This document shows, in pieces, positions 1 through 40,305 of a stretch of 41,194 nt of DNA (the stretch's first letter is position 1; the number at the start of each line of letters is the position of its first letter). Location: the NCBI GenBank assembly GCA_000388065.2, contig KB932206.1, one strand, 5' to 3'. Below the pieces are notes generated by a model. The model was not told the DNA's origin, ran no database searches, and saw only the letters and a list, made by a program, of their open reading frames with translations. The translations under genes and the position numbers were made by a program. Origin of the DNA: Fonticula alba ATCC 38817. Lineage: Eukaryota; Protista; Nucleariida.

Positions 1-244
1 GGCGGCGGTCCGGCGCCCCCGCAGAGGCCGGATGAAACGCCCCCCGGGCTGTGTCCTGCCTCGGGGGCGCGAGCAGGCCGGCCCCTGGCCCCGCCGCCTG
101 GAGGCCATGTGCGTTGGCAGTGTGGTCCGCCGATGGCCGCGGCGCATTCGGCCGGGGATGGCCCGGCACCCGGTGTTCGGTGTGGGCCCGGGGAGGGGGG
201 GAGGGGGACAATGGCTGTGGCGTGTATTTGGGGCCCTGCCGGGG

Positions 245-1087
245 TCAATGGCCCGGGGGCGCGTCGTCCGTGTAGGCGATGCTCAGCGGCGAGGCCAGGC
301 CCGGGCCCCGGAGGTGGAGGCGCAGGCGCGTCCTGCCGGGCTGCAGGAGCCCGCACGGCAGGGCGCGGTGGCCGGCATCGAGCAGCAGCTCCGGCATGAA
401 GGTGGCCGCGGGGGTGGCCCGGCGCTCGAGCAGGGCCACACTGCCGTCCGGGAAGGCCGCGCGCAGGGCGGCCGGCAGGCGGTGCAGGGGCACCTCGGTG
501 CCGGCCAGCTCCACGCGCATGTGGACCATGGCCACCAGCGGCGGGTCCACGAGCAGCAGGGGCGACGCCTCCTCCGGGCAGGTGGGGATGTGCGCGCGAA
601 AGTCCTCGGCCAGGTGGACCACCCGCCGGGAGGCGTGGAGCACGTCGGCGCTTCGGGCCACAAACAGCCGGGAGTGGCACAGGAAAAACAGGCACCCCGG
701 CGGCGTGGCCGCGGCCCGGCGCCACTCGCACAGCGACTGGAAGACATCCCGCGGGAGCCGCAGCCCCGGGTGAAGGGGCGTCGGCGCCGGGGCAAACACC
801 GCGCCCAGGAAGACCATGCGCTCCGGGCCGCAGCGCACCGCCAGCATGTGCGGCTCCGGGCCCAGGTCCACCTGGCGGCTGAGGGTCCGGAAGGTGATGC
901 GCGTCAGCCGCGGGACCAGCAGCCCGGCCGGCCGGGCAACATTGTGCATGTCCATCTGCCTGGTGGGCACGAGGAAGGCCTCGTGCCGCTGCTCCGGCGA
1001 ATCCTCGCCGGGAACCGTGATCCGGTACTTCTGCCGGCAGCCGAGGCAAGCACAGGGTCAGAGGGGGGCCGTGGCGAGGGGTGCCGG

Positions 1088-1119
<32 letters not shown>

Positions 1120-4100
1120 TGTGTGGCGGCCTCCCGGGCACGGACCTGGTACGTTTGGAGTACCGAGGCCGGGCCGAGGGCCTGGTACAGCTGCCGCTCC
1201 AGCTGCTCCGGGTCCAGCGGCGGCAGGCGGCGCTCCTCATCCATCGACAGGAAGCAGGTGGCCATGGCGATTTCCGGCGGCCAGGCGTACTTCAGGCGCA
1301 TGGGGCCCGGCAGCTGGCGGTGGAGATCCTGGCCCAGGAGCAGGTGGTGCGGGGGCAGCTCCGGCGAGGGATCGGTGGCCGGCCTGCGCCGGGCCATTGG
1401 ACGAGTGTCAGAATGCATGGCCAGCTGGGGGGGAGGGGGGGGGGGGGGCCTGACCAGGGTGGCCCGCGCCCCCGGGCGGCACCGGCGGCCACTGGGCCAC
1501 GTACAGCATGTGGAGCCCCTGGTCCAGGAAGAGGCCCGGGCCGTCGTCGAGGCAGTGACGCCGCAGCAGGCGCAGCGTCTCCTCCGGGGCCTGGATCCCG
1601 CTGTGATCCAGGTGCATGGGGCTGATGGCGTCGGCCACCGGCAGGCGAATGGCCGGGCCCAGGAGCGGCAGCTGCAGCAGGACCGTCGGCGGCACGCCCA
1701 GCAGGCGGAGCCCCCCGCCCGGCGCGCTGAGGTGCACGAAGCCCGGCCACCGGCGCATGGACAGCATGCCGGCCATGACCGGCTCCATGTGGGGGTCCAG
1801 TAGCTGAGCCACCCGGGCGTGCGCCGTGCCCCTGGGCAGCGGCAGGTCGAAGGTCTGCGGCACACATGCGGGGGGGGGGGGGGGGGGGGGGGGNNNNNNN
1901 NNNNNNNNNNNNNNNNNNNNNNNNNNNNNNNNNNNNNNNNNNNNNNNNNNNNNNNNNNNNNNNNNNNNNNNNNNNNNNNNNNNNNNNNNNNNNNNNNNNN
2001 NNNNNNNNNNNNNNNNNNNNNNNNNNNNNNNNNNNNNNNNNNNNNNNNNNNNNNNNNNNNNNNNNNNNNNNNNNNNNNNNNNNNNNNNNNNNNNNNNNNN
2101 NNNNNNNNNNNNNNNNNNNNNNNNNNNNNNNNNNNNNNNNNNNNNNNNNNNNNNNNNNNNNNNNNNNNNNNNNNNNNNNNNNNNNNNNNNNNNNNNNNNN
2201 NNNNNNNNNNNNNNNNNNNNNNNNNNNNNNNNNNNNNNNNNNNNNNNNNNNNNNNNNNNNNNNNNNNNNNNNNNNNNNNNNNNNNNNNNNNNNNNNNNNN
2301 NNNNNNNNNNNNNNNNNNNNNNNNNNNNNNNNNNNNNNNNNNNNNNNNNNNNNNNNNNNNNNNNNNNNNNNNNNNNNNNNNNNNNNNNNNNNNNNNNNNN
2401 NNNNNNNNNNNNNNNNNNNNNNNNNNNNNNNNNNNNNNNNNNNNNNNNNNNNNNNNNNNNNNNNNNNNNNNNNNNNNNNNNNNNNNNNNNNNNNNNNNNN
2501 NNNNNNNNNNNNNNNNNNNNNNNNNNNNNNNNNNNNNNNNNNNNNNNNNNNNNNNNNNNNNNNNNNNNNNNGGGGGGGCCGTGCAGCCGGGCACACGGGC
2601 ATCCACCACCGACAGGGTACCTGGCCCACGGACAGCATGGTGTCGTCCATGATTTGCAGCACGGCCTCCATGGCCGAGGAGTATTTGATGGGGGCGCCGG
2701 GGCCCGAGCCCGGGCCCACCGACAGGTGGATCTCGACGCGGGCGGCATGCGGCGGCAGCATGCTGGCCCCGGCCCAGTGGAGGCTGCGCCCGGCAAAGAG
2801 CCGGCCAAAGTCCCACGCGCTCAGGGTAAGTTGCTGGTGCGAGGGGGCCGCCCGGGGGTCGGGGTCGGGCCTGGCCGGCCGGTGGGCATCGGGCGGGTGA
2901 GTACCGTGCGGGTGGCGGCGCGGGGCCCGGAGGCGGGTGGTACGCACTCGAGCAGCAGCGCATGGCCGCCGGACGACCGGAGAAAGGCCTCCTCGGCTTC
3001 GGGCAGCCATTCCCGGAGCTCCCGATAGGCCAGCGGGTTGACGGTGGCGCGGCCGGGGGGGAACCGGGCCAGCTGGCTGGCCCGTGCCTCCAAACTCAAA
3101 AGGGCCTGGTGCTCGGCATGGCCGCCGGGCGGCGGACTAAGCAGCAGCCACTGCCGGCGCGCGGGCCCCGCCGCCCCAGGCGCCAGGACATGCAGGCAGC
3201 CCGCCGCGGCGGAGTGCTTTTCCGGCAGCAGCCCCACCGGCCGGTCCACCTCCGGCGCGTCCGCCCAGCCGATACCGTGAATGCCGGCGAGCAGCCTGTG
3301 CCCCTGCCACTCGAAGGGCAGGTCCTGCGGCGGGGAGGAGGGTGAGCTACGTCAGGAGGCCCGGTTACAGGCACATACACACAGGCATGCCCATGTGAGC
3401 AGGCGTGGCCGGATGTGCGCGTGCGTGCGTGCGGATGTGCGTGCAGGGAGCGATTGCTGGGCGCTTGTTGGCCGCTGCGCGCACCCGGTCCAGGCGCATG
3501 GTGGCCCCGGCGTGGGCGGCCAGGAAGGCCTGCTTGAGCGTCTCGTCGCAGGGCAGGCCCCGCGCGGCGGCCGGGTCGCCGGCAAAGCGGATGTCCACGC
3601 GCGCGGCCACCGGTATCCCGGGTAGGGGGGCCAGGTGCAGGGTGTCCATGTGGACCGGGCCCAGGGCTGCCAAATCCCGCGGGTGCATGGCCATGGTGAA
3701 GCGGGGGACCCGGTCGCTCGGGCTTCCGGGGGGCGGGGGCTCGGGTCAGCGGGCAGCGGGGGGGGGGGGGGGGGGCAGATTCGTCAGCGCGAAAAGCCCG
3801 GCCCAAGGCCCGGGCGGCGGGGCGCGGCACATACCGCACGTCAAACAGCGCCCCCTGGGCGAGGAATCGCGCGGCACCCCGGCGCAGGTCGTCCGGGCCG
3901 GCGATCCGCCGGAAGGCGGCCGGCGAGACCAGAAGGGTGCCCTCGGCACTGTCCGGGGCCCCGGGCGCCAGGTCCAGCAGCACCGCCTCGGGCCGGCCGG
4001 GATCCGGCCGCAGGGAGGCCACCAGGGGCCGGTCGTCGGGCCTGTCCCGCGGCGAGCGCACATGAATGACGGTCGGCTCGGGCCCGTGGCCGGTGGCCAT

Positions 4101-4614
4101 GCCGGCCGAGACCTCGCGGAAGTCCCGGTCCATGAGCCGCGACACGCGGAATCGACCGCGGGGCCTTGCCAGGCGGATGATCTACCAGGGCGCAGGGTGG
4201 CCAGTCAGACGGGGGTCGGCGGCGGGGTAGCGGGCGCGGGGGGGGGNNNNNNNNNNNNNNNNNNNNNNNNNNNNNNNNNNNNNNNNNNNNNNNNNNNNNN
4301 NNNNNNNNNNNNNNNNNNNNNNNNNNNNNNNNNNNNNNNNNNNNNNNNNNNNNNNNNNNNNNNNNNNNNNNNNNNNNNNNNNNNNNNNNNNNNNNNNNNN
4401 NNNNNNNNNNNNNNNNNNNNNNNNNNNNNNNNNNNNNNNNNNNNNNNNNNNNNNNNNNNNNNNNNNNNNNNNNNNNNNNNNNNNNNNNNNNNNNNNNNNN
4501 NNNNNNNNNNNNNNNNNNNNNNNNNNNNNNNNNNNNNNNNNNNNNNNNNNNNNNNNNNNNNNNNNNNNNNNNNNNNNNNNNNNNNNNNNNNNNNNNNNNN
4601 NNNNNNNNNNNNNN

Positions 4615-4684
<70 letters not shown>

Positions 4685-5134
4685 AGAAAGGACGGGCGGG
4701 CAAGAGGCGGCATACATCGCCCCGGCGCAGCGGGGCCCCGGCCAGCATGGCCAGCATGCCGGGCCGGTCAAGCCCATCGTCGGCCAGGTCACTGTCGAGG
4801 CAGACAACGGCCAGGTCCCGGGGCGCGTCGCCGGGGCCCAGCAGCAGGGGCTGTCCCCGGGTGTTGAGCGACAAAAGCAGGCGCTCGCCGGCTCGGAGGG
4901 CGGTCCCCGGCAGGACCGGCCGCGTGCAGATGCTGGGCATCCACGCGTACATGTACGTGCACATATGTAGATGCACATATGTAGATGCACATATGTAGAT
5001 GCACATATGTACGTGAAAATGCATATGTACACGTAGATGCAGGCGCAGACGCAGACGCAGGCATACATGCACATGCACATGTACACAAACACACACATGT
5101 ACACAAATACACACATGTACACAAATACACACAT

Positions 5135-5206
<72 letters not shown>

Positions 5207-6255
5207 GTTCAAGGTCAAAATGACAGCGAGATGCAGTCCGATCAGCGCACCGGATCTGGAGTGTCCGGCCATCGTGCGCCGCATAGAAGCTGCCGTTCGG
5301 GTGCCGGGCCCACCCGGCGCACAGGGCCCGGGCCACCGGGCCGTCGGCCGGCGCCAGCAGCACATCGAGGCTGGTGGCCGGAAGGTGGACCATGTCCACC
5401 GGGTAGAGCTGCCCCAGCGGCAGGGCCACCCCATGGGAGGGGGCCCCCGGCGGGGTGACCCCCACGACCACCGGGCCGCCGTGCAGGCGCACGCGCCCGC
5501 CCGGCTTGGCGACCAGGACCACCTGGGTGTCGGCCGAAAGGAGCCCATGGCCGACGGCGCCCGCCGGCGCACGGAGCTCCACCACCTCCAGCGCCAGCTC
5601 CACACCGCCGGCCACCAGGCAAAGGGTCTACGCCGGGTCAGAGCCATGCTGCAGAGCCCCGCAAGGGGGGCGAGCCAGGCACAGGCGGCCAAGGGGAATG
5701 GGCTTGCCGCGTACCTGGGCCATGCGCATGAGCTGTGCCCCGGGCGCGGCAAGGGCCGCGGCGGCCGCGGCCTCCAGCGCCGCGAAGGGGACCCGGGGCG
5801 GCTGCCCCGCGGCCGGGCAGCCTGGCCGCGCGGCCGACACGCAAAGGCCGATGGCCTGCAGCTTGGCCGGCAGGACGCGCCGCGCCTCGAGCAGGCCCTT
5901 GTTGCTCGGGAGGCCGGCCGCCTCCTCGGGAAGAAGGCACCCGCCCGCGGCCCGGGGGTCGGGCCTGGCACCGCACCACCGCGTGAGTCAGGGCCAACAA
6001 GCGCAAAGGGCCGGGCCCTGGGGTCTGAGCAGAGGGCACGCACCGCGCTTCCAGGAGCAGGTGCCCAAGTGCGATGCACAGCGGCCGCCCGGCGGCCAGC
6101 TTGGCGAAGACATCCGGCCCGAGCAGCAGCTCGCCCGGGTGCGGGGCGGCGCCGCCGCCGCCGCCGCCCGGCCACACGGGCAGCTCGGTGCCGTCGTCGA
6201 GGCGGAGCACTCGCAGGGACCGGCCGGCGGCACCGCCGGGCGTCATCTCGGTCAT
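245..6255 (-). CDS. Multi-exon protein (paralogue A) built from repeated CDC48/p97/PEX6 N-domain-like modules; no ATPase domain seen
   Basis: Exons stitched by eye: ATG 6255 MTEMTPGG..GELLLGPDVFAKL..; PDPRAAGG..RRVLPAKLQAIGLCV..; GGVELALEVVEL..HGLLSADTQVVL; DLAVVCLDSD..LAGAPLRRGDV; EGTLLVSPAAFRRI; MAMHPRDLAALGPVHMDTLHLAPLPGIPVAARVDIRF; last exon ends at TGA 245-247. Segments are colinear with paralogue B. Two N-gaps (1894-2571, 4247-4614) interrupt it. Confidence 0.7.
4944..5201. repeat. Intronic compound repeat: short ATGTAGATGCACAT-type units grading into a (CA)n microsatellite
   Basis: Visible directly; lies inside an intron of paralogue A. Confidence 0.9.
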
Positions 6256-8495
6256 GGCGCGGGGAGGGGGGCGGGGGACGGCACGGAGCGGAGGGGAAGC
6301 AGGGCCGTGCAGGGGACCGTGGTCTCTGACGGACGCGATGGGACCCCGGCCGGGCGCGCCCCTCGCGGCCGCCGGCCGAAATACGGCCGACGCCGGCCGT
6401 GGCGGGGGACCGCCGTCGGGTGCGGCCGTGGCGGGGGGGGGGGGGGGGGCGGCCCCCGCCGCAACAAAAGCCGACCACCGGCCCAGGGCCCCCCGCCCAT
6501 TCCCCGGGCCGCGGTCGGGGGGGGCGGCCGGCCCGGCGATGCGGTGGCATCTGGTGGCGGGGGCTTGTTTTGTTTTTGTCCATCCCCCCTGCTGGTCCGC
6601 GGCCCGGCGCACGGCCGGGGACCGCCCCCCGCATCGGGGGCCGGCGAGGGGCCCTGGCACAGGTGGTGCCAACAGCAGCCGTGGCCCGGGTCGCTGCGTT
6701 GGCCGGGCCGCGCCCGGGCCACCGGCGCGCCGAACGCCCCGGCTGCGAGGGGGACACCCTGCGGAAGAGGCCAAGACAGAGAGGCGGGTGGCCGGGCGGC
6801 GGGCCCCGCTGGCCGCCGGGCCAGCGCGCGCCGGAGGGCCGGGGGCATACAACGGCCGTGTGCACTCCGGCCCGACCCCGGCGGCCAGCACCGCGCCCTC
6901 GAGCAGGGCAGCAAGGGCGGCCGCCCGGGCCGGCCACCGGGCCGCCCCGTGGCACAGTTTCCCCGGCCCGCCAGACGTACCGCCCGGACATGGGCGCGGC
7001 CGCCAGCACGCCGGGCACCGATCGAGCCAACAGGGGCCCCTGCCGGGCGCCCGGTCCGGGAGGAAGCGGCGGCGGCCCGACGAGCGCGGCCAGCAGCCGA
7101 GTTTGATTTGTTCGGCGGGCCTTTGCCCCGGACATATACATATGCACACATGCTGGGGCACCGAGCAGCCAGCATCCGTCAGCTGGGAAGGGCGAGACGG
7201 GGAGCAGTGCTCGACACGCCTGCATCGGCGAGCCGGGTGGGGGCAGGGAGTCCTGGCTGCCAGGCCGTCGGCGCGCAGGCCGCCGGGCTGCCGGCCTCAC
7301 GCCATGACGGAGACCCGGCTGTGAGGGGCGCCCCTCGCAGTCGGTCGAGGAGGCCAGCCCTCCAGAGCGAGGGGCGCATGGTGATCGGCGGCGGCCGGCA
7401 GCAGGCTCGGCCGGGCCCCGTCGGCTCGGCGCAAATGGGCTCGCCTCCGTCGCAGGCGCAGGTCCACCACGCCCGGCGAGTCCGTGCGCCAGCGCCGATA
7501 ACGCACCTCGGCCGCGCGGAAAAGGTGCCCACCTCCGGCAGGAGCACCGTCCGTCGCAGCCCGGGAGCCACTCGCCAGGAGGAGCCGGGCCCCCGCCGGG
7601 GAAGGCACGCCCCCGGAGGGGGGCGATGCCGGCGGGCCCGGGTGAGCGCGGTGGCCTCGGGTCCGCCTCCCCGCCCCTCCCCTTGCCGGGTGCCCGCTGC
7701 CCGGCTGGACCCATATGGTCGAGGTGGCATCGGCCGGTGAAACGCGCAAGCCGCCGCCGGGGCGGGAGCCCCCTTGGATGCCGGGACATCGCGCGTCCAG
7801 GACGGGGAGCATGCCCGGTCCGGCGCCGGGGAGCGGCTGATTGTCGCACGCGACTATGTGGCGCGCGCGCGGCGGCGGGCGGGCCTCGCTTTGCCCGGCT
7901 GGCGAGATCGCGCGGAGGAATGCGCCCCGCGCCGCGAAGTGCACGTGGTCTGCAGCGTTGTTGTAACGAGCCCTGCCCGAAACCCCCGCGTCCGTGCACG
8001 TGACCCATCTGAGGGCCGCACTTTGCCCACGCGGATGCCGGGGTATCAACTTGGTACAAATGGTCCGACTGTGTAAGCATCATGTAAAGGGCGAGGCACT
8101 TTCGGAGGAACCTCGACTTAATACAATTCTTTGTTCTCCTCAATCACGCCTTTTGCCGAACCCTTTCAGTTGTCCGGCGCAGGGCGGGCCATCCTGCCGG
8201 GCGGTTCTGGTCGAGCGCGCGGATGTCAAAAATGCGGGCACCCGGAGGATGAAACGCGCGGGGCCGCACGAACCAGGGTCCGTGGGCATGTGCAGCCGTG
8301 CCGGCGCGCGCGTCCCGGCATGCGTCCCCCCCTTCCCGCCTGGCACATGCACGCGCGGGCAAAGGCGCCGGCATGCTGCCATCGGCGCACAGTGTGTGCG
8401 ACACACACACACACACACACATACACACACGCGCGCGCGCGCGCGACCGGACATGGGGGCTCGACACAGACACGCAGCACCGGCGGGGGGATGTA

Positions 8496-11400
8496 TTAGG
8501 GTGCTGGCTGGTGGGGGCCCGGGCCCGGGGGCGGCCCCGCGCCATCGGCCAGGGCCGGCGCCCGGGGCGCCCCCATGCGGCGGAGATGGACCTCGGTCTT
8601 GCCGGGCTCGAAGAGCCCGCACGGGGTGGCCCGGCCGTCGGCGTCGAGCAGCAGCTCCGGCATGAGGATGGCCTCGGCGCCGGGGATGGGCCGGCGCTCC
8701 AGGAGGGCCATGCTGCCGCCGGGGAAGGCCGCCTGCAGGGCCGCCGGCAGGTCCAGCAGGCCGAGGCCCGGGCCTGCGGGCGGGGGCCCGGCGCCGAGGC
8801 CCGGCATGAGCCGCATGTGCACCGCGCTCAGGCGGAGGTCCACCTGATGGGCATGCGGCATGGACAGGACGGGCCTCTCCCGGGGGTAGAGGTGGTCGCG
8901 GAAGTCCCCGGTCAGGCGCACCACCCCGGGGGCGGTGTGGGTATCGGCGCGCCGGGCCACGAAGCCCCGGCCGGCGCACTCGAAGAAGAGGTGATCCCGC
9001 GTGTGGCCGGCCGGGCCGAGGGCCTCGCACAGCGAGCGGAAGGCCCCGCGCGGCAGCGACAGCCCCGGGTACAGGAGCGTCGGGCCCGGGACAAACTCCA
9101 CCCGCAGCGAGAGCATCAGCGGCCCGGACCGGAGGACCAGCGAGTATGCCCGCGGCAGGGGGGCCGACATGCTGTCCAGCGTCTGGAAGGAGGCCTGCGT
9201 CAGGCCGGGCACCCAAAACCCGGCACGGACATCGCGCCTGATGTCGGCCGCCAGCTGCCGGGTGAGAGTGAAGTTCAGCTGGCACGAGGGGCCCAGCATG
9301 GTGGAGTGGGTCTGCCAGCCGGCATGCGTGCGTGTCAGAGGCTGCAGGCACACTCGCTCGTGTGTGTGTGGGTGTGGGTGTGGGCGTGGGCGCGCGTGTG
9401 GGCGTGGGCGTGGGCGCGCGTGTGGGCGTGGGCGTGGGCGCGCGTGTGGGCGTGTCTGTGCACGGGCGCATGGTCGTGTCGAAGGTGTGGCAAAGGGGCA
9501 GCAAAGAGATGGCAAGGCCTACCGTGTATGCTTGGGTCAGCCAGGACCGGGGGAGGGCCCGGAGGAGCAGGTGTTCCAGCTGCCGGGGGTCCAGGTCCGG
9601 CAGCGGTCCCGGCGGGCTCGTGGACACCTTGTACTCAAGGGTGAGCAGCTTGCACGGCCGGGTGTATACCAGGGCAGGCGCCTGCTCGGCCCCCCGGGAC
9701 AGGCCCTTGCCGATGATGATGTGGTTGCGCCGGAGGGCCGCATGGCCGCGGTCGGCGCCGCGCGGGCTGCACCAGCAGGCGGGCCCCGCGGGCGGAGGGG
9801 GGCGGGGGCGGNNNNNNNNNNNNNNNNNNNNNNNNNNNNNNNNNNNNNNNNNNNNNNNNNNNNNNNNNNNNNNNNNNNNNNNNNNNNNNNNNNNNNNNNN
9901 NNNNNNNNNNNNNNNNNNNNNNNNNNNNNNNNNNNNNNNNNNNNNNNNNNNNNNNNNNNNNNNNNNNNNNNNNNNNNNNNNNNNNNNNNNNNNNNNNNNN
10001 NNNNNNNNNNNGGGGGGGGGGGGGGCAGTCAGCAGGACGAGGGCGGGGCGCGAGCGTGCCGACATGCGGAGCGGCAAGGGGCCGCGCCGCGGGACGCACC
10101 TGGCCGACGGTGAGCACCGACCCGAGGAAGCGACGGAAGAAGGCCTCCTCCAGCAGGGCGTGCGATATGTCGTGGACCGGCTGCTGCTGCCGCTGCTGCT
10201 GCTGCTGCTCCGGCCCCGGGAAGAGGTGGACCTCGACCAGGTCCAGCACCGGCGGCGTGCTAGTGGCCACGGCCCAGCGAAGGACCGGCCCGGGGAAGAG
10301 CCGCTCGAGGTCCTCGCCACTGAGGATGACGTGGCCATCGGGCACCGGCGAGCGGGGACTCGGGTCGGGGCTGTGTGGGAAGGTGTGAGAGAGAGAGACG
10401 GAGAGAGCGAGAGCGAGCGGGGGGGGAAAAGGACAAGGGGAGGAGGGAAACACACTAAACCAAGAGAAGGTGGCCGCCGGACTGGAGGAAAACTTCCGAC
10501 CCGCCGGGCAGCTGGTCACGCAGCAGTCGATAGTCGTCGGGGGTGACGGCCGCCCGGCCGGGTGTGAAGCCGGCCAGTGGGCTGGCGCTGGCCTGCAGAC
10601 ACAGCGGCCCGGCGCCCCGGAGAGGCTGGCCCACCAGCAGCCAGTTGGGTGCGGGGGAGGGCGCCAGCGCGCGCGGGCCGGCCGACGCCGGGCAGGGGGG
10701 GCCCGCCATCGGCGGCACCATGTGGCCGGCCACCACGTCCAGGGCCGCGGGAGGGTCGCTCGGCAGGCGGCCCACCGGACGGCCGACCGTGGGCGCCTCG
10801 GCCCAGGTGACCCGGTGGACCCGGGCAAGCAGCCGGGCGCCGTGGGATTCGAGCGGCAACGCCTGCGTCGGGGGGTCAGTGGGGCAGCCGGGCCGGCAAG
10901 GCAGCAAGCATGCGGGACCGCCAGGGCCCCGCGTGGGGAGGACGCACCCGGTCCAGGCGCAGGGTGGCCCCGCCATGTGCGGCCAGGAGGTCGCGCCGGA
11001 GCCGGTCCGGGCACAGGCCCTGCCGCAGGGGCTGCCCGGCCGCCGGGGCGAAGGACACCTGGGCCGAGGCCGCGAGCGGCAGGCCCGGGGCCGGGCGCAG
11101 CCGCGCCGGCGAGGGGCCAGGCACCCCGAGCCCCGGGCCATCGAGCGGGTGAACGGCCACGGCGAAGGGTCCTACGCGGTGGCTCGGGCTTCGGGGCGAG
11201 GGGCATCAGCCGTGGGCCGACAGGCAGGGCAGGGGAGCTCGCACCCCGAAGGGGGGGGGGGGGGGGCACACGCGGCAGGGCACGACGCACCGGACATCGA
11301 ACAGCGCGCCGTTGACATGGAAAAGGGCCGCGCCCTGGGCCAGGTCCTCCGGGCTGGCCACCCGCCGGAAGGCGGCGGGCGAGACGAACAGCGTCCCTTC

Positions 11401-12941
11401 GGGGCCGGTCACGGCCCCCGGGACCGGGGTCAGCAGGACCAGCTCCGACGCGTCGGGGCTCCGGCACAGGGCCACCAGCTGGTGCGCCTCGCCGGCACCC
11501 CCGCGCGGGCTTTCCACATAGAGGGCGGTGGGGGAGGCGTCCTGTCGCGCCAGGCCGACGGGGACCTCCCTGTAGTGGCGGTCCATCAGACGGATGACCC
11601 GGATCGAGTGCCCGGCCGCCGGGAAGCGGACAACCTTCCCCCGGTGCGGCCGGGCGTTAGGCGGCGCGGGTGTCAGACGCGGGCGGGATGGGGCGGGGCG
11701 GGACAAGCAAAACCGGCAGGGCAGGCGGACACACGTCGCCCACGCGCAGCGGCACGCCGGCCAGCTGGGACAGCATCTGGGCATGGTCGAGCTGGCCGGC
11801 CTCGACATCGGCGGCCAGCCAGGCGACGGCCAAGTCCGGCGGGGCCGCGCACGGGGTGAGCACCAGCGGGCGCCCCTGCAGCAGGACCGCCAGCGGGGCC
11901 AGCAGCTGGAGGCTGGCGCGCAGGCCGGCCCCGGGCCCCGGGCACACCCTGGAGTCGGCACGTCAGCACACCACGACGCAGGGGCGGCAGAGCCAAGGCA
12001 ACAAACACCAGAGCCCGCGCGTACCGGATCTCGAAGAGGCGGTCCTCGTGCGCCGCGTAGAAGGACCGGCCCGGGGGGGTGGGCTGGCAGGCGGCCAGCG
12101 CCCGGGCCGCCGGGCCGCCGGCCGGCGCGATCAGCACATTCAGCTCGGTGTCCAGGGTGTAGATGGCGTCCACCGGGTGGTACATGCCGGGGCCGGGGTG
12201 GTCGGTTGCGCCCGCGGGCGCCAGGGCCACCACCACCGGCGCGTGCATCAGGGCCGGCCGTGTCGCCGGGCAGGCGACCAGGATGACATCGGTGTCGGGC
12301 CCGGGGGTGCCGGCGGCCGCGGTGCCGGCGGCCGTGCGAAGCTCAACCACCTCCAGCTCGAGGCCGTCGGCCTCCAGGCGGAGGATCTGCCCCGAGGGTC
12401 AGGCGGGGCTCAGGCAGTCGGGCGAAGGCCGGGGCCTGAGTGCGTGCGTGTGGGCGTGTGCGTGTGTGCGAGCGTGTGGGCGTGCGTGCGTGTGGGCGGG
12501 CGAGCGGGCGAGCGGGCGCACTTGGGCCAGGCGCAGGTGGCCATGCGTGGCGATGGCCGCGCGGGCCGCGATCTCGAGCGTGGAGAAGAGGACGCCCGGG
12601 TTGTGGCCGACAGGGGCGCCGCCCGGCCGGGCCGGCCGCACGGCCAGCCCGATGGCCTCGAGCTCGGTCGGCCGGGCGCACCGCGTCACGGCCGTGTGCC
12701 CGGCCTCGGGCTCGTATGCCGCCAGGGCGGGGGAGCCGGCTCCGGCATGTGGGTCGGGCCTGGGCTCGGGTCAGCAAAGCACCGGGGCCCGATGTGTCGG
12801 CCGGCCGCGGGGGCCGGGCGGAAGGCGGCCCGAGGCCGGGTGCGCGCACCTCGATGTGGGGACCGGAGCGTCGCCGGGGGCGTCTGGCCGGCCGCAAGAG
12901 GCGCCGATCGCCCCGGTGCTCTGGTCCACGGGAGAGTCCAT
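8496..12941 (-). CDS. Multi-exon protein (paralogue B), tandem paralogue of 245-6255
   Basis: Segment-by-segment similarity to paralogue A: SFYAAHEDRLFEIR vs SFYAAHDGRTLQIR; EGTLFVSPAAFRRV vs EGTLLVSPAAFRRI; LLAAHGGATLRLDRV vs FLAAHAGATMRLDRV; LPAALQAAFPGGSMALLERR..MPELLLDA vs LPAALRAAFPDGSVALLERR..MPELLLDA. Stop TAA at 8496-8498. The ATG at 12941 is tentative. Confidence 0.7.
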
Positions 12942-13333
12942 GCTTTCGGAGCGTGGGGGGACGGGGGGGACCGGGGGGGGGGGGGGAGGGGGGAAGGCGC
13001 ACTGGGGGGGGGGGATTGGCAGCGAACCAAGCCCGTGTCGGCATCCCGGGCCCCTTCAAAGATCCGGGCTTTTTGGCTGTGACGCAGGGACAAGCGGCGG
13101 CGGCCGGGGATCGGGGGCCGGGGGGCGGCGTGTTTCGCGGGCCCTTCACGGCGGGCGCCAACTCAAAGGGGCAATAAAAGAGCGTCCAATAAAAAAAGGC
13201 CCCTTTTGATGTGCCCGCGCTGGCACGGTTGGCTGTTTTTTTTTTCTTCCCAGGCGCGTGAGAACCGCCCGGGGCGGCGGGCGGGAAGCCGAAAAAATAA
13301 ATGCCCCCGGGGCGGGACCTCCTACAAGCTTCG

Positions 13334-13404
13334 GCGTCGATGGTTTAGTGGTAGAATTGCCGCCTGCCACGCGGTAGACCCGGGTTCGATTCCCGGTCGA
13401 CGCA
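13334..13404 (+). tRNA. tRNA-Gly(GCC)
   Basis: 71 nt cloverleaf: acceptor GCGTCGA/TCGACGC, anticodon stem-loop GCCGC-CTGCCAC-GCGGT, T-loop GGTTCGATTCC, downstream T-runs as Pol III terminator. Confidence 0.97.
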
Positions 13405-15249
13405 AGCCCTCTCTTTTCCTTTTTGCCTGCCCTGGGGCCCGGGCGGGGGGGCATTGCCGCCGGTTGCGCGCCGTGCCCGCGCCAGGTCCGGGGCAGACCC
13501 GGGGGGGCCGCCGGCCCCGAGGCGTGGTGGGCGTGTGATGCGGATGTGGGGCGGTGTGCTGGCGGGGGCGGGCGGCGTGGGTGGCGTGGGCTCCCTCCGC
13601 CCGCACATGCGCCCGGAACGCCGGGGGCCAGGGGAACATGTGTGTGTGTCGTGCCGTGCGTTGTCGGTGGGGCCCGGCCGGGGGCCGTCGCGAGACGAGG
13701 GGCGGGGCCATGTGCCGGCGAGGCGTCCATCGCCCGGCGGAGAGGGGGCAGGGGGAGGAGGGCCCCGCATGTGCACCTGGGCCAGGGGGCGTGGGAGGTC
13801 CCTCGGTCGGCTGGCGGTGAGCGTGCCCAGGCGGCTCTGCCGGGGACGTGGCCGGCCCGCCGGGCCCTGGGAGGCGCGGCGCCTGGGGCCAAAGCCGATG
13901 GGCCTGCCCGCCGCGCGCGTGGGGGTGCCTTGTGCGGGCTGGCGGTGAGAGAGGGACCAGCCGCCGGCCCCTGCTGGGCCGGGGGACATGTGGCGAGGCG
14001 CTCGGTTATGGCTATGCCCCGGGCGATCGGCCGGCGGCTGCCCGGCAAGAGCCACCCCGGCAGCCCGGGAGGCGCTGCCACTCCGCGGCAGGCGGACGAG
14101 GGCGGGCCGCGAGCAGGGCGCCATCCGGGCAGGCGCGGCGGTGGCCTGCCCGCCATGCCGCCAGCCGTCGGGAATCGGCCCGAGCTTGAGCCAAGCACGG
14201 GGGCCGGGGTCGAGCCCGACTGTGCCGGTCCCCGGGGCAAGCGAGGGGCACCGGTGGAGGGAGGTCGGGCGAGCCGGCCAGCAGCAAGCCACGACAATGG
14301 CTGCCGCCGGCGCCGGCAGCCCCGGGCGAGGGCGGGGCGCTTCTTGATCGCGGGGCCCCCTCCGGCGGGCCGGCCAGTCCGGGGCCCGGCGCGCGTCCGC
14401 CAATCTCGATGTCCAGATTGTGGATCCAGCGAGTTGGCAGCACTGCCGGCTGGCGGGGCTCCCAGCGGGCGCCCGGTGCGATGTGCTTCCGGGCCCGCGC
14501 CCGGGGATGTGGCCCGAGCTGGGGGCGCGCGTGCGCGTGCCGGGGGCATGCCGCGGGATCGGCCGGCCTGCCGGAGGGGCTTGCGGCGCCGGGCACATGC
14601 CTCGGCGATCGTGCGTCGCCCTCGGCGGGTCCGGGGGAGCTGTCCATGGGGTGCCTCGGACAGGGCGGCCGCCCGGCAGGGCGCCTGGTGTGATCCGGCC
14701 GAGCAGGGCCCAGCGCTGGCGGCCCCGACGCGCGGGTGTCCGCCGCCCGTCGGACAGGACCAGCGCCCCCGGGTGCGGGACGAAGCGCCATCATCGGGCC
14801 GGGGGTGCTTGAGCGGCCTGCCCCGCCAACAGCAAACCCCCGGGCGGCCCGGACTTCCGCAGGGAGGCTGCCGGGTGCGCGTCGCCGGCGGCCGCTGGCC
14901 GGGCACGCCCCGAGAGCGGCCAGGGGGGGGCCCCCGGCGCAGGCATATGGCTTGGGCAGGCGGCCAGCGCGCGGCCGGGCGCCGCGCCCCTTGCCCTGGG
15001 GGGGGTGGGGCGCTCGCCGGCTCGGATCGGGCGGGGTTCCTGTCTCCCTCGTTCTGGGGGGCGGCGGGTCCCCTCGCCGCCGAAAAATAAATGGCCCAAC
15101 ACGAACCTGGCACTGCGCGGGTCGCCGTGCCCCCCCGAGTGGCCGAGGAGTCCCCGCTGAGAGATCGGATGGCCCTCTGCCCGCCTAGGTTGGGAGAACA
15201 CGCCTGCCGGTGGTGCGTTGTTCCCTGTGCGCCTGCAAAAAGAACATGG

Positions 15250-15328
15250 TGATTGGAGTGGGACTCGAACCCACGCGGTTTCCCACCAGTGCCTTAAACT
15301 GGCGCCTTAACCACTCGGCCATCCAACC
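15250..15328 (-). tRNA. tRNA-Leu(AAG), followed by genomic CCA (15247-15249)
   Basis: Reverse complement identical to 16364-16442; anticodon loop TTAAGGC, long variable arm, GGTTCGAGTCCC T-arm. Confidence 0.96.
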
Positions 15329-16363
15329 TGTTGATGGGAAGCGCCCCCGCGCGAGGGCATAAATCCAAGAACACCTCCGTGCGCGCGCGCGCGCTCCCGC
15401 GACCTTAGCTGGGCGCCCGGGCGTCGGGCCCTGCCGCCGGCGCGAGGGAGGAGGGGCCCACACTTCGGCGTGGCGGGGGTCGGCGCTTGGGCCTGTGGCG
15501 TCCCTCGTCGGCGGTGGTCCGCGAGGCGGGGGCCACCCGCGACAGGGCATGCCGCGCTCTGTCGGGCGGGCGGAAAGAGGCATGCCGGGGCTGTGTGCAC
15601 TTTCCGCGGCCTCGCCGGCGACCTGGCCCGGCATGGGGCGTGCCCTGGCGCCACGGGGCGCAATGCGCGCGGCTGCCGGAGCTCCGCCGGCCTTGGGTTC
15701 GGCGGATGTCGCAGTGCCGAGTGCGCCCGGCCGGGTGGGGGGCGATGATGGCCAGGCGCCGGGGGCCCGAGCGTCGGCACGCTCAGGGCGGCCGGGCAAG
15801 CGGGCCTGCCGCGGCTGCCGTCCCGCGGCCGGCCAGCCTGCTTGGTGGTGTCGCATCCGACCGCGACAGATGCGGGGAGATAGACAGCGGCAGAGAGAGA
15901 GGAAGAGGGCAAGAGAGAGAGAGACATTCTCACATGCATACACACGGCCAGGAGACCCGGAGGGGGGGGACGCGGCATGGGTTCGATCGAGGTCCACTGG
16001 AGCTGGGGGGGATGTGTCGCTGCAGCGGCTTCCCGGGGCCCGGGCGCCGCATTTGACTCCCTGGGGGGGAAGCCCCAACTCGGACGCGAGGCGCCAATCT
16101 CGGTGTGTGCGCGCGCGTGCACCCTGGCGCCGGACCGGCTACGGGCAGCACCTGCGGCCGCCATGCCCCGGGAGGGAGGCCAGGAGCAGCCGTTGCACCC
16201 GCCCGGAGGGACGGGAGCTGCGCCGGGCCGATGGCCGGCACGCCGCGCGGCCGGGCCATCTTCCGCGACCGGGGTGGGGGCATCTCGGCAGCGGGGGCAG
16301 GCGGCGCCCGTGGATCGGTGAGGTCGAACAAGTATGCGCTTGGGGGTGGGGAATCCATCAGCA

Positions 16364-16442
16364 GGTTGGATGGCCGAGTGGTTAAGGCGCCAGTTTAAGG
16401 CACTGGTGGGAAACCGCGTGGGTTCGAGTCCCACTCCAATCA
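16364..16442 (+). tRNA. tRNA-Leu(AAG), followed by genomic CCA (16443-16445)
   Basis: GGTTGGA..TCCAATC acceptor, A-box TGGCCGAGTGG, stem-loop CCAGT-TTAAGGC-ACTGG, then A, CCA, TGTTCTTTTT. Confidence 0.96.
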
Positions 16443-16865
16443 CCATGTTCTTTTTGCTTGCCCGCGCCCCGGGCGATTGTTCTGCCAGAAGGGCGAGGGA
16501 CCCGAGGGGGGGACACACGGCGGGGCGGGGACACACGGCGGGGCGGGGACACACGGCGGGGCGTGCCTCCTTGCGGGGGGCCGGAGCGTGGCCCGCCCCC
16601 CCGTCGTCTCATGCTCCCCCCCCGGTCCTGGGAGGGAGGATCTGTTGGGGGGATGCACGCGGGCGGGGGAGCGTCCGTCCGGCCGACCTGGGGCGGAGCG
16701 CCGCACCGGGTGCGCGGCGAACCGCGCACAGTGTTTGTGGTTTTTTAAATTCTGCCTCCACATGTGTGTGCGCGTGTGTGTGTTTCCGCCGCGCCCTGGG
16801 TCGCGCTCCGTCGGCCTGCCCCGCCGCCAGGCAAAAGGGCGCGGCCGCGCGCAAAAGAGGAGGCG

Positions 16866-16936
16866 TGCGTCGACCGGGAATCGAACCCGGGTCTACCGCG
16901 TGGCAGGCGGCAATTCTACCACTAAACCATCGACGC
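16866..16936 (-). tRNA. tRNA-Gly(GCC)
   Basis: Reverse complement identical to 13334-13404. Confidence 0.97.
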
Positions 16937-17520
16937 GATCGCTGGGAGGATGGCCCCGGGGTGGCCATAAGTCGTGGCAGCTGTTGGAAGCCCCCCGCCG
17001 CCCGGGCCAGATCCCGCCAGGCGGGGCCGGTCCACCCACCCACCCACACACACACACACACCAAGCCACAACAGAGGGCGGCCCCCCCCCCCCCCGGGTT
17101 GCCAGCNNNNNNNNNNNNNNNNNNNNNNNNNNNNNNNNNNNNNNNNNNNNNNNNNNNNNNNNNNNNNNNNNNNNNNNNNNNNNNNNNNNNNNNNNNNNNN
17201 NNNNNNNNNNNNNNNNNNNNNNNNNNNNNNNNNNNNNNNNNNNNNNNNNNNNNNNNNNNNNNNNNNNNNNNNNNNNNNNNNNNNNNNNNNNNNNNNNNNN
17301 NNNNNNNNNNNNNNNNNNNNNNNNNNNNNNNNNNNNNNNNNNNNNNNNNNNNNNNNNNNNNNNNNNNNNNNNNNNNNNNNNNNNNNNNNNNNNNNNNNNN
17401 NNNNNNNNNNNNNNNNNNNNNNNNNNNNNNNNNNNNNNNNNNNNNNNNNNNNNNNNNNNNNNNNNNNNNNNNNNNNNNNNNNNNNNNNNNNNNNNNNNNN
17501 NNNNNCCCCGCCCCTGGCAG

Positions 17521-19884
17521 TGCTCTTCCCCGAGGGCGGCGGCCAGCCGGCCGACCGGGGCACCGTGCGTCGCCGCTGCCCCGGCCTGCCGGGGCTTCTT
17601 CTTCTTGCTCTTCGGCTGCTCGCCCCTCGCCCGCCCCGCTGACCGCTTCCCCGGCTCGCCCGGCCCCCCCCCCTCCCTCCATGGCGATCTGCGCCCAGAT
17701 CGCCGGCATCCCCGTCATGGATGTCCAGCGCCATGACGGCCTGTGCGTGCACTACCTCGCGACGGTCCCCCCGCCGGCTGGCATGACGGTCGAGGTGGCG
17801 CTCGACTGGGAGCACCGCTGGGACGTCATGCAGCAGCACTCCGGCCAGCACCTGTTCTCGGCCACGGCCCTGGCCACCTTCGGCTGGCGCACCTACCGGT
17901 GGGACTACCGGCCGGACATCTGCTCGGTCGAGCTGGTCACCGAGTCGGTGCGTCGGCGCGCCCAGCCGCGCCGGGCCGGCCTCTTGCGTCTGCTTTTCCT
18001 TCTGTTCCCCGCCCTCGCCCCGCGCCCTCCTGCCACGTCCTCACCCACGCCCCCCTCCCCTCCCCCGGCAGGCCATCGTCACCGAGGATGTGCTGGCGCA
18101 GCTGGAGCGCGCGGTCAACGCGGCCATCGGCCGCGCTCACCCGGTGGCCGCGCGCATCCACAACCCCGAGGACGACGCCGGCCCCACCCGCGTCACCTCC
18201 AAGCAGTCCCTCTTCAATGCGTCGCTGTGAGTTTGCCCCCCTTTTTGTCGCCCCCCCCCTCCCCCCCTGCCGCCGGCTGCCTGCGCACGCACGCACGCAC
18301 GCACAACCTGACAGCCATACGCCCGCTGCCCATCCGGCCGTGGCCTCCGCTGTGGTAGCGGCCCGACCCCGCCGGTTCGCATCATCGAGATCGACACGGC
18401 CGACAGCTGCACCTGCTGCGGCACCCATGTGTCCAACACCTCCGAGCTGCAGGTGCGCTTGGTGCTTTTGCCCCGAGGGTTTCCCCGTGCTTTCTTTTTT
18501 TCTTCCTTCCTCCGGCTTGCCCCGCTCCTGCCCCGCTGCCGGTCGCCGGTCGCGCGGGCCTTGCCCGGGCCGCCCCCCCCCCCCTGGCTGGCATGCGCTC
18601 ACCGCCACTCGCCCGGCCTGGCGCCGCGTAGCTCTTCAAGATCCTGCCCACGGTGACCACGCGCCGGCGCAGCGGCCTCCCCACCACCACCATCAGCTTC
18701 CTGGCCGGCGGGCGCATCCTCGGCTTCATGAGCCACCTGCTGCAGGTGGACCAGGCGGTCGGGGCGCTGCTGTCCTGCTCGCGACCCGAGTACGCCCAGA
18801 TGATCGAGTACAACAAGACCCGGCTGAATGACGCGCGCGCCCTGTCCAGCTCGCTGCTGTCGCACACCTGCGGCTTCCTCCACACCACCATGCGCACCTC
18901 TTCGGCGGACGGTGCGTGTGCCCGGGCCGCGGCATCCATCCTCTCCTGGCCCACTTGCCTGCCTGCCTGCTGGCTGACTGGTTGGCCCGTGCCGCCCTGC
19001 TCGACTCCCCCTGTGGCGCCGCTTCGCGCGCGCGCGCGCGTGCATTTGCCCCCTGGCTGTCCTGTGGTCTCTTTTTTGTCGTCGTATCTCTCCTTTTCCT
19101 CCCTCTTCTCATCCTTTGTTCCTTCATCTCTCTCTTCTCATCTTTTGTTCCTTCATCCCTCCCTTCTCATCCTTTGTTCCTTCATCTCTCTCTTCTCATC
19201 CTTTGTTCCTTCATCTCTCCCTTCTCATCCTTTGTTCCTTCATCTCTCTCTTCTCATCTTTTGTTCCTTCTTTCATCCTTCCTTTTCCTCTCCTCTCGTC
19301 TCCTCTCCCCCCCCCCTCCCCCATTCGGCCCCGTCTCACCCCGGCCCATCCCATGCGCCGACACGCCCACGGCGAAAAAAACAGTCACCGTGTGGCGCGC
19401 ATTCGACGTGCCGATCGAGCAGCTCAAGACCATCGTCCTGAAGATCGCCCAGCTCCTGCAACAGTCGCATGCCGAGGCGCCGGCCGCACGGCCGGCGCGC
19501 CAGCTCCTGGCCGTGTCCTGTCCGGCCCCGGTCCCGGCCAAGGGCGGCAAGAAGGCCGCCGACCAGCAGCCGGCCCAGCCGCAGCAGACCCTGCCGTACC
19601 TGCTGCTGACGGTGGCCGGCGATGCGCCCGACGCCGAGGCGCTTGCCACCGCCGCCTCGGACGCCCTGGTCTCCGCGGTGCAGGGGCCCCTGCCGAACAC
19701 CTGCTATCGGATCGCCGTCCCGCCGGCGGCCGGCGGCGGGGGCCGCGGGCGTGGGGCCGCGGCGGCCGCCCCGGCCGCTGCGCCGCTCGCCTCGATTTGC
19801 TGCCAGGGGACCATCGCCTCGCAGGCCGAGCTGGATCATGTCCTCCAGGCCTGGGGTGCTTCGCGACAGCTCCACCTGTGCTGA
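17521..19884 (+). CDS. AARSD1: Alanyl-tRNA editing protein (AlaX/AARSD1-like), multi-exon; 5' end probably lies in the N-gap 17107-17506
   Basis: VLFPEGGGQPADRGT, then IAGIPVMDV, MQQHSGQHL (HxxxH) and IIEIDTADSCTCCGTHV (CxGxH Zn ligands); GT-AG introns restore the frame; stop at 19884. Confidence 0.88.
19100..19270. repeat. About 6 x 29-bp pyrimidine-rich tandem repeat (TTCTCATCCTTTGTTCCTTCATCTCTCTC) in an AARSD1 intron
   Basis: Visible directly. Confidence 0.9.
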
Positions 19885-20189
19885 TGCGCCGGCCGCAGGC
19901 CCCCTTGCATGGGGGCTCGCCCGCGCCTCGGCTGTCCTCTCCCCCGCGCCTGGCCCGGGAAAATACACGCTAGCATGGCCCTCCCCCCCCCCTCCCCTCG
20001 TCCCTTTGTCCACTTGTCCCCTCGTCCCCGGACACACGGAGTGCGCCCCGCCCCTGGGGCACCCACAGAGCATCTTTCGGCAGGCCGGCCGGCCCGGCTG
20101 CGTGTGTATCAGGGAAATGGGGGGGGGGGCGCGAATGGGCGGAAAGTGGGAGGAAGCCCCCCCGCCCGCGGGGGCGTGCACATCAACAA

Positions 20190-22713: not shown

Positions 22714-23344
22714 GCTGTACGTTGGGGAGGGGGAGGGGGGGATGTAGGCTCCGTGGAGGGGAAGAGGAGGGCAGGGGATTGGGGGGGGGGGGGGGGGGGG
22801 GAGAGAGAGAGGAGGGGGGGCAGGGAGCTTTGGATGTTTTCGGATCGCGGGGGGAAGCCTCCCGACCCGCGGCGGCGGGCCCTTTTATAGCGCGCGCGCG
22901 CGCGGGCCGGGGCGCGGCGGCGGCGGCGGCGCATGGTTCGACGAGAGGCCTGCCCACCCTGCCTTGGCACGACTACCGTCCGTTCCTTGGCCGGGGAGGG
23001 GCGGACAGAGGCCCCCCACCCGACCAGGCATCAAACACCATAGACTCTTGAGCCTCATGGAGATCGGGCCGGGGCTGGCGCCAAAACACCGGCGGAGGCG
23101 CGACCGAGGCGGCCCCCCAGCCATCCAACGGAGGCGGGGCGCGCGACGGCATTGGACTGCACGGCCCCGCCGCCGTCCGACCCCGCACCCCCCAGCCAAC
23201 GGCGGGCATGCGGACCCGCCCGACCAGCGCCCAGCCCGTGGCAGACACCGACCGGCGGGCACCCCGACCGCGGGCGCCTCGGTCACGTGTGTGGATCGTG
23301 TGACTGGGGCTGACGGAGGGCGTTCGGCTGGCGGTGTGAGGTGC

Positions 23345-39538: not shown

Positions 39539-40305
39539 GCCGCCCCCGGCCGGCCGGCTTGGTGCCGGGGGGCGGCCAGGTGCAACCGACGTGTCGACGC
39601 GCAGAGGCGCCGGGGCGCCAGGTCGCCGGGCTCCGGGCGACGGCATACTGCGAGAGGGGGGGCGTGGGGGGNNNNNNNNNNNNNNNNNNNNNNNNNNNNN
39701 NNNNNNNNNNNNNNNNNNNNNNNNNNNNNNNNNNNNNNNNNNNNNNNNNNNNNNNNNNNNNNNNNNNNNNNNNNNNNNNNNNNNNNNNNNNNNNNNNNNN
39801 NNNNNNNNNNNNNNNNNNNNNNNNNNNNNNNNNNNNNNNNNNNNNNNNNNNNNNNNNNNNNNNNNNNNNNNNNNNNNNNNNNNNNNNNNNNNNNNNNNNN
39901 NNNNNNNNNNNNNNNNNNNNNNNNNNNNNNNNNNNNNNNNNNNNNNNNNNNNNNNNNNNNNNNNNNNNNNNNNNNNNNNNNNNNNNNNNNNNNNNNNNNN
40001 NNNNNNNNNNNNNNNGGGGGAGGGCCCACCGGTGGTGGCTCCCCCCCGTTGGCCACCTTGCAGGTGCGCGCACCCGCGAGCACAAAGGGGGGGGGATGGG
40101 CGCCGGGCGGAGCGAACGCACACGCGCCAGGGGAACACGGTGATCGGGCGCGCCCTGGGGGCCAGGGCGCACAGCCCGGTGAGACCGCCGGCCCCCGGCG
40201 CATGTGGGAGAGTTCGCCCGGGCCGCCGGCCGGGGGGGGGCATCTGGCCGGGGCCGGCCGGGCGTCCGCAGATTGGGCTGCCGAAGGCAAGTGGGCGCAC
40301 ACGGG

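Follow-up and report, generated by a model that had tools for sequence, protein, structure and literature searches.

A Fonticula alba gene family predicted to encode chains of about six tandem p97/NSF-type N-domains without an ATPase motor

The N-terminal domains (N-domains) found in type II AAA+ ATPases, namely p97/Cdc48/VAT, NSF/Sec18, PEX1, Pex6 (N1 and N2) and SPATA5/AFG2, share a two-lobed fold, a double-psi barrel followed by a beta-clam, and are known to be where substrates and cofactors dock onto the Cdc48, NSF and PEX-type unfolding machines. Pex1 and Pex6 carry two N-domains in tandem. Ufd1, whose UT3 domain likewise has the N-domain fold without an ATPase of its own, acts in single copy as a helper. 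Here we describe two adjacent genes, A and B, both on the minus strand of a 41,194 nucleotide (nt) stretch of Fonticula alba ATCC 38817 contig KB932206.1 (the window, to which all coordinates refer unless another contig is named). An exact look-up of public proteins mapped H696_04153 (XP_009496312.1, 'hypothetical protein') onto the window; this is gene A (248..6255, including a proposed 5' extension), and gene B (8499..~12761) is its paralogue at about 42% identity. A first-pass annotation, made from the letters of the DNA, had proposed that the two genes encode motor-less proteins built from repeated N-domain modules. The best explanation of the data as a whole, and one we consider highly probable, is that they belong to a Fonticula family of chains of about six N-domains lacking a motor, for which a docking scaffold is a possible role.

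The gene A protein contains a unit of ~200 residues repeated in tandem (U1–U6). Unit U4 (protein residues 451–652; 1720..3168) was chosen for modelling because all its exons are confirmed by RNA, and was predicted with AlphaFold2 from an alignment of 29 repeat units (U2–U6 cut from a seven-protein family alignment). The model has a mean predicted local distance difference test score (pLDDT) of 90.3 and a predicted template modelling score (pTM) of 0.81. In a Foldseek search of the PDB the top 50 matches, with probability 1.00 and E between 4e-8 and 7e-7 over about 180–220 columns, were without exception N-domains of NSF, Sec18, p97 or SPATA5. VIA-align gave Z 12.5 to p97-N (3tiw, 3qq7) and 12.0 to NSF-N, with root-mean-square deviations of 3.3–3.8 Å, over p97 residues 21–187 and NSF residues 1–188, i.e. 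both lobes. A search independent of Foldseek returned 12 chains at Z >= 8 (NSF-N, three CDC48A-N, PEX1-N, Sec18-N, two DEPDC5 entries, Pex6 N1 and N2, UFD1 and VAT-N), of which none matched one lobe only, the matches at Z <= 7 being mostly of the one-lobe kind; isolated double-psi barrels match just the first lobe of U4, at Z 6–7. The two-lobed alignments cover 150–165 of about 170–190 target residues. In an N-domain the first lobe is a six-stranded double-psi barrel made of two strand-strand-helix-strand halves, and the second, which comes immediately after it along the chain, is a small beta-barrel with a single helix. The U4 model agrees with this plan: its first lobe runs strand-helix-strand-strand and then strand-helix-strand, and aligns with p97 residues 21–106 and with NSF-N; the second lobe (model residues 118–200) aligns with p97 residues 112–187. 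The predicted order of strands and helices is one-to-one with that of p97-N. Searches of AlphaFold DB and ESM Atlas concur, and superposition of the U4 model with the AlphaFold DB models of the paralogues H696_05766 and H696_05299 gives template modelling scores of 0.88 and 0.79, respectively. Language-model features of the whole protein also lead to the CDC48_2, CDC48_N, PEX-1N and UFD1_N2 clusters (scores 0.77–0.86), which we treat as a lead only. The idea of double-psi barrel plus beta-clam modules is thus borne out by a model that matches known N-domains over both lobes.

When each of U2–U6 was compared with a profile of the remaining units, all five aligned in register over 138–177 columns (E 2e-5, 1e-7, 2e-9, 1e-5 and 7e-10), which confirms the internal repetition that had been proposed for checking. 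Pairwise hhalign comparison gave E 6e-5 for U2–U4, 9e-5 for U5–U6 and 2e-3 for U4–U5. Other pairs were weaker, their alignments mostly long and roughly in register, except that U2–U3 and U3–U5 aligned only over short, out-of-register stretches. A match in register to the unit profile was also obtained with the second lobe of U1 (E 1.2e-3). On these alignments the count is five firmly supported units plus U1, of which the second lobe only is supported, in keeping with the four to six units first envisaged. The fold is modelled confidently for U4, would extend to U2, U3, U5 and U6, which profile–profile comparison ties to U4, and by profile may reach the second lobe of U1. In the U4 model strands cover residues 6–200 of 202, from which it follows that the units would abut with almost no linker.

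The recurring motif classes picked out in the first-pass annotation are real, since they share columns across the 29-unit alignment, in which different units are 10–20% identical. GTLLVSPAAF, ATVNPLAY and GLRLPRDVF fall on strand 2/helix 1, ARVEIHL and ARVDIRF on the first strand of the second lobe, and LRRGD and SVGQ on strand 8. One assignment has to be corrected: GHVILSGEDLERL of gene B is the equivalent of QQLTLSAWDFGRL and belongs to the second psi-loop half of the barrel and not to the first. The repetition extends to the gene structure. Exons 2 to 9 of gene A alternate in length (377, 217, 347, 238, 377, 250, 350 and 238 nt) and in phase, which is 0 and 2 by turns. One exon pair encodes about 195–209 residues and is offset from the domain boundary, so that it begins with the closing strands of one unit and ends at the ...GD or ...GQ turn in the unit that follows. 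Because of this pair length and phase alternation, the exon pattern indicates growth of the gene by tandem duplication of an intron-bearing segment, an exon pair of about 350–377 nt (phase 0) plus 217–250 nt (phase 2).

Neither gene A nor gene B encodes an AAA ATPase or, apart from the repeats, any domain that can be recognized. The Walker A pattern G-x4-GK[ST] is absent from every family protein, and its sole match in a six-frame translation of 1–13300, GLFEPGKT, lies within a conserved strand of the last unit of gene B. The coding sequence of gene A is entirely accounted for by repeats and ends in TGA, and RNA runs across both of its assembly gaps, so the earlier reading that no motor is present holds. 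All seven proteins of the family end shortly past U6, and at a different locus only 450 nt separate the stop codon of one such gene from the start of the next. No AAA family of Pfam was matched. A PDB sequence search with the unit profile found no N-domain, its one chance match having E 1.5; a word-indexed homologue search found nothing with the last exon, and with the 29-unit profile only a fragment of H696_06124. By inspection, the family sequences contain no signal-peptide-like or membrane-spanning stretch. A split system with an adjacent AAA gene was considered and rejected, there being no AAA gene beside family members at two other loci, and a UniRef label on H696_06122, 'CPSF A subunit C-terminal domain', was not reproduced by Pfam.

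Gene A is spliced. The public protein of 1064 residues fits exactly 10 GT-AG exons, whose junctions include those seen in RNA-library contigs from two 2012 samples of Fonticula alba; 36–59% of sampled gene A words are present in those contigs. Mapped to 2575–4245, the contigs show three minus-strand GT-AG joints (2870/71–2946/47, 3324–3483 and 3723–3834) and loose ends at 2621 and 4181, whose continuations lie at 1825–1854 and 4716–4745; in this way 2621 is connected with 1854, and 4181 with 4716, across introns that have GT-AG ends. Since RNA contigs bridge both, the assembly gaps at 1894..2571 and 4247..4614 are intronic (introns 1855–2620 and 4182–4715), and no AAA domain appears in gene A once they are closed. 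The spliced frame is open throughout and continuous across the two gaps, the first of which is flanked by G runs and the second by G homopolymers.

In the direction of transcription, exon 2 (5251..5627, 377 nt, phase 0; exact protein-to-exon mapping) encodes the end of U1 and the first half of the U2 barrel, and exon 3 (4716..4932, 217 nt, phase 2) the second half of that barrel and the start of the second lobe, ending ...RRGD; its boundary at 4716 is confirmed by the RNA contig from 4181. Exon 4 (3835..4181, 347 nt, phase 0; RNA joint 3722|3835) holds the end of U2 and the first half of the U3 barrel. RNA joints define the next three, exon 5 (3485..3722, 238 nt, phase 2) in U3, exon 6 (2948..3324, 377 nt, phase 0) with the end of U3 and the first half of the U4 barrel, and exon 7 (2621..2870, 250 nt, phase 2) in U4, ending ...SVGQ. 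Exon 8 (1505..1854, 350 nt, phase 0; RNA junction and protein mapping) carries the end of U4 and the first half of the U5 barrel, and exon 9 (1146..1383, 238 nt, phase 2; protein-to-exon mapping) continues U5. The last exon (248..1030, 783 nt) is intron-free, encodes the end of U5 and the whole of U6, aligns with 9314–8499 of gene B at 49% identity, and is followed by the stop codon TGA at 247–245.

Conserved coding sequence lies upstream of the annotated start of gene A, and the public model, which begins downstream of it, therefore lacks most of U1. We propose an unannotated start, the ATG at 6255. The piece 5971..6255 has an open frame from MTEM, aligns with the N-terminus of H696_05767 and would contain, together with the GELLLGPDVFAKL motif, a candidate for the first lobe of U1. 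The rest of U1, comprising the second psi half and the start of the second lobe, lies at 5715..5966, a block conserved with 12761–12516 of gene B; tblastn with H696_05767 covers 5891–5259. Just the last five codons of this block (5729–5715) are in the public model. Between exons 2 and 3 there is a repeat at 5076–5212.

At 3485–3613, contigs from all four RNA runs match gene A with three differences and then diverge into other sequence, which is absent from the window and from two other family loci. They probably come from another family member sharing a near-identical segment of ~113–129 nt, and such sharing would suggest recent gene conversion.

Gene B was delimited by comparing all stop-free minus-strand pieces of 1–8100 with those of 8100–13300. 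The window is very GC-rich (about 70–80%), and BLAST without composition correction gave GC-driven noise, so that those results were discarded; composition-corrected BLASTP gave eight blocks colinear between A and B, at 35–51% identity and E 8e-7 to 6e-34. The two long, colinear and strongly diverged paralogues first noticed from the open reading frames are accordingly confirmed, and family matches in the window are confined to these two stretches. Gene B has intron positions and phases identical to those of gene A, with homologous junctions, the same phases and good donors at six positions and two more junctions past its gap. Its visible part of U1, a colinear block with A, is at 12522..12761 (ending ...LRLAQ, donor GTGCGC). 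There follow, with the corresponding gene A exon in brackets, 12025..12386 (5627–5251; same phase, GT-AG ends), 11735..11948 (4932–4716; ending ...RVGD), 11291..11634 (4181–3835), 10948..11188 (3722–3485), 10456..10862 (3324–2948), 10100..10370 (2870–2621; ending ...TVGQ, donor GTGCGT) and, beyond the gap, 9523..9766 (1383–1146; 244 nt, phase 2), those from 11735..11948 onwards being placed by homologous junctions. The last exon (8499..9341, with the acceptor at 9341 or 9311), placed by alignment with A, encodes the end of U5 and U6, with the stop codon at 8498–8496.

The assembly gap of gene B (9812..10011) lies where the counterpart of gene A exon 1854–1505 (about 350 nt, phase 0 to 2) is expected. 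No frame of 10099–10012 or 9811–9767 resembles that exon, and without it the exons flanking the gap are out of frame. Judged from these flanking frames, the gap most probably stands for the whole exon of ~350 nt together with parts of two introns. It had been argued that this gap, at 200 nt, was too small to hide an AAA domain; no motor is indeed present, but the nominal length is an underestimate, since the missing exon belongs inside it. Gene B was absent from the matches to the U5–U6 profile described below, and so it apparently has no public model.

G or C homopolymer runs flank five of the six gaps in the window (1894–2571, 4247–4614, 9812–10011, 17107–17505 and 39672–40015), the longest, of ~70 bases, being at 4615–4683, and the G runs beside the three gaps of genes A and B probably caused them. 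An apparent inverted repeat, 4247–4639 against 17082–17474, consists merely of N runs and homopolymer tracts. Long microsatellites of GT/CA and GCGT also occur in the introns of both genes, in homologous places (4975–5240, 9323–9490, 1049–1133 and 12421–12544). Beyond gene B, four tRNA genes at 13334–16936 form a palindromic array, the two outer ones being Gly(GCC), first on the plus and then on the minus strand, and the two inner ones Leu(AAG), first on the minus and then on the plus strand; the array coincides with inverted repeats. Identical base counts in 1–1000 and 37001–38000 are a coincidence, the two sequences being unrelated.

When 1.84 billion representative proteins were searched with a profile of U5–U6, seven matched, all from Fonticula alba, which bears on the question of taxonomic range raised in the first-pass annotation: H696_04153, H696_05766, H696_05767, H696_06118, H696_06122, H696_06124 and H696_05299. 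So far the family is found only in this species, with at least eight predicted genes, and its genes sit in tandem clusters. At 18049–23145 of KB932219.1 an annotated gene of 481 amino acids (aa) and H696_06124 (409 aa), arranged head to tail, both match the family; the former may be the missing front half of the latter, a single gene split by annotation. H696_06118 lacks U3. The unit positions come out as separate groups in a tree of units (96–100% support for each), and equivalent units of different paralogues are 31–47% identical. Because units group by position, and given these identities against 10–20% between different units, the multi-unit chain predates the expansion of the family; and because each unit position has been kept separately since then, selection on the whole array is argued. 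For three of the four units that they share, the tree places gene A with H696_05767. A block duplication of the pair B and A from H696_05766 and H696_05767 was entertained on this basis, gene B being marginally closer to H696_05766 (43.0% vs 41.5%); it was not adopted and serves as a lead only. Soil and sediment metagenomes, as well as 2025 DNA runs with another organism code, contain 9–67% of the 31-letter words of gene A, so the same or a very close strain occurs in other samples.

How do these proteins compare with the systems already described? The model of U4 matches p97-N at Z 12.5, NSF-N at 11.9–12.0, PEX1-N at 10.8 and Pex6 N1 at 10.3; in contrast to the type II AAA+ ATPases, the Fonticula proteins have no ATPase, and about six copies of the domain rather than one or two. 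Ufd1 (Z 10.3 over 163 residues) is likewise motor-less, but has a single copy and a tail with SHP and Npl4-binding sites, whereas the Fonticula proteins have six copies and no such tail. The N-terminal domain of DEPDC5/Iml1, a motor-less protein of GATOR1/SEACIT, matches over residues 3–167 at Z 10.6. Its presence (two entries) among the chains at Z >= 8 suggests that DEPDC5 may be another motor-less protein with a single N-domain, besides Ufd1. Predicted models of cytochrome-b5, CAP-Gly, VWA and cNMP-binding proteins also contain an N-domain-like module and no AAA motor. DEPDC5 and these predicted fusions carry the module in single copy among other domains, whereas the Fonticula proteins consist of N-domains only. 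H696_05766, H696_05767, H696_06118, H696_06122, H696_06124 and H696_05299 share the unit order and the tandem-cluster habit of genes A and B and do not differ from them in kind. The fold, and motor-less proteins with a single N-domain (Ufd1), are thus known already; no protein composed only of some six N-domains turned up in the literature searched or outside Fonticula. That literature yielded nothing on Fonticula with Cdc48 or on tandem motor-less N-domains, weak evidence of novelty given the limited coverage of the search.

To our knowledge, protein docking is the role of every domain of the N-domain fold characterized so far; the partners are UBX, VIM and SHP motifs for p97-N, alpha-SNAP for NSF-N, Pex15 for Pex6 N1 and ubiquitin for Ufd1. 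Our working hypothesis, offered tentatively and by analogy with these domains, is that the Fonticula protein may be a rigid, cytosolic, multivalent protein-binding scaffold. In such a scaffold every unit would bind a partner of its own; the chain would keep several partners in one place, or keep them from the motor that they usually serve, and would itself do no unfolding. We favour this role because the fold is that of a docking module, the units abut and each unit position is separately conserved.

Several observations weigh against a family of motor-less N-domain scaffolds. Docking as a function is deduced only from the fold, and sequence identity to known N-domains is 7–14%. Among the ten exon pieces and seven full proteins searched, no Pfam family was matched at E <= 1, any N-domain profile included, so that the comparison with CDC48_N, CDC48_2, PEX-1N and UFD1 proposed at the outset came out negative. 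A single unit of the six was modelled confidently; AlphaFold2 of the full-length protein from seven sequences reached pLDDT 47 and pTM 0.31, and we excluded that model from any claim on unit arrangement. The candidate first lobe of U1 (6255–5971) was undetected by the unit profile comparison, and this piece is one base out of frame with the one that follows, near a C5 run (5960–5975), a change of frame that could be a homopolymer assembly error or a 34-nt intron. Gene B has one unread exon (gap 9812–10011), and the RNA runs hold only 5–11% of its sampled words.

Other roles would use the same fold differently. The six units might close into a ring that mimics the N-tier of an NSF or Cdc48 hexamer, and act as a decoy or regulator for SNAPs, UBX/SHP proteins or Ufd1–Npl4. 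The usual number of units equals the number of subunits in the hexamer, the units abut without linkers, and NSF-N is the best Foldseek match; yet the N-domains of real hexamers are held by the D1 ring and are not known to form rings by themselves, H696_06118 would be one unit short, the full-length model is too poor to reveal a ring, and units at 10–20% identity are too diverged for equivalent sites. We regard such a ring as unlikely, and place at the same low level the related idea that closed or near-closed, one-chain and motor-less replicas of that N-tier have diversified to capture motor cofactors, or pathogen effectors aimed at the motors. A little less likely still is a high-avidity reader of ubiquitin chains, in which each unit would bind ubiquitin as the UT3 domain of Ufd1 does, so reading or shielding long chains. 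UFD1 is among the full-length structural matches (Z 10.3) and UFD1_N2 clusters are among the feature look-alikes, but NSF, p97 and PEX1 outscore it, the Pfam profiles of UFD1 have no sequence match, and in a protein that reads a homopolymer one would expect the units to have stayed alike, whereas these are strongly individualized.

That the genes are functionless, whether lineage-specific repeats, pseudogenes or artefacts of annotation, seems very improbable. The family has been found in one species only, all annotated copies are 'hypothetical proteins', several public models are truncated or split, and gene B, besides containing a gap, is only weakly supported by RNA; against this, gene A is spliced exactly at the predicted GT-AG sites, A and B retain open frames and intron phases at about 42% identity, and the core pattern is preserved in at least seven paralogues, to a degree that permits a model of pLDDT 90. 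We can put hardly any weight on a normal AAA ATPase of which only the N-terminal part is seen, its motor lying in a gap or beyond the window. The region does contain three assembly gaps, and the window extends only 244 nt past the stop codon of gene A, but RNA bridges both gaps of that gene, the gap in gene B stands for a known exon of ~350 nt, seven of the seven paralogues end just past U6, and the 450 nt between one such end and the next family gene argue likewise.

For annotation, it follows that the public model of gene A lacks its first unit, that gene B lacks a public model, and that the three gaps can be placed relative to exons. More broadly, a chain of about six N-domains and nothing else would demonstrate that the docking module of the Cdc48, NSF and PEX-type machines can live independently as a repeat scaffold, and this family, in an aggregative amoeba related to fungi, would be a natural test case for what N-domains are capable of without a motor.

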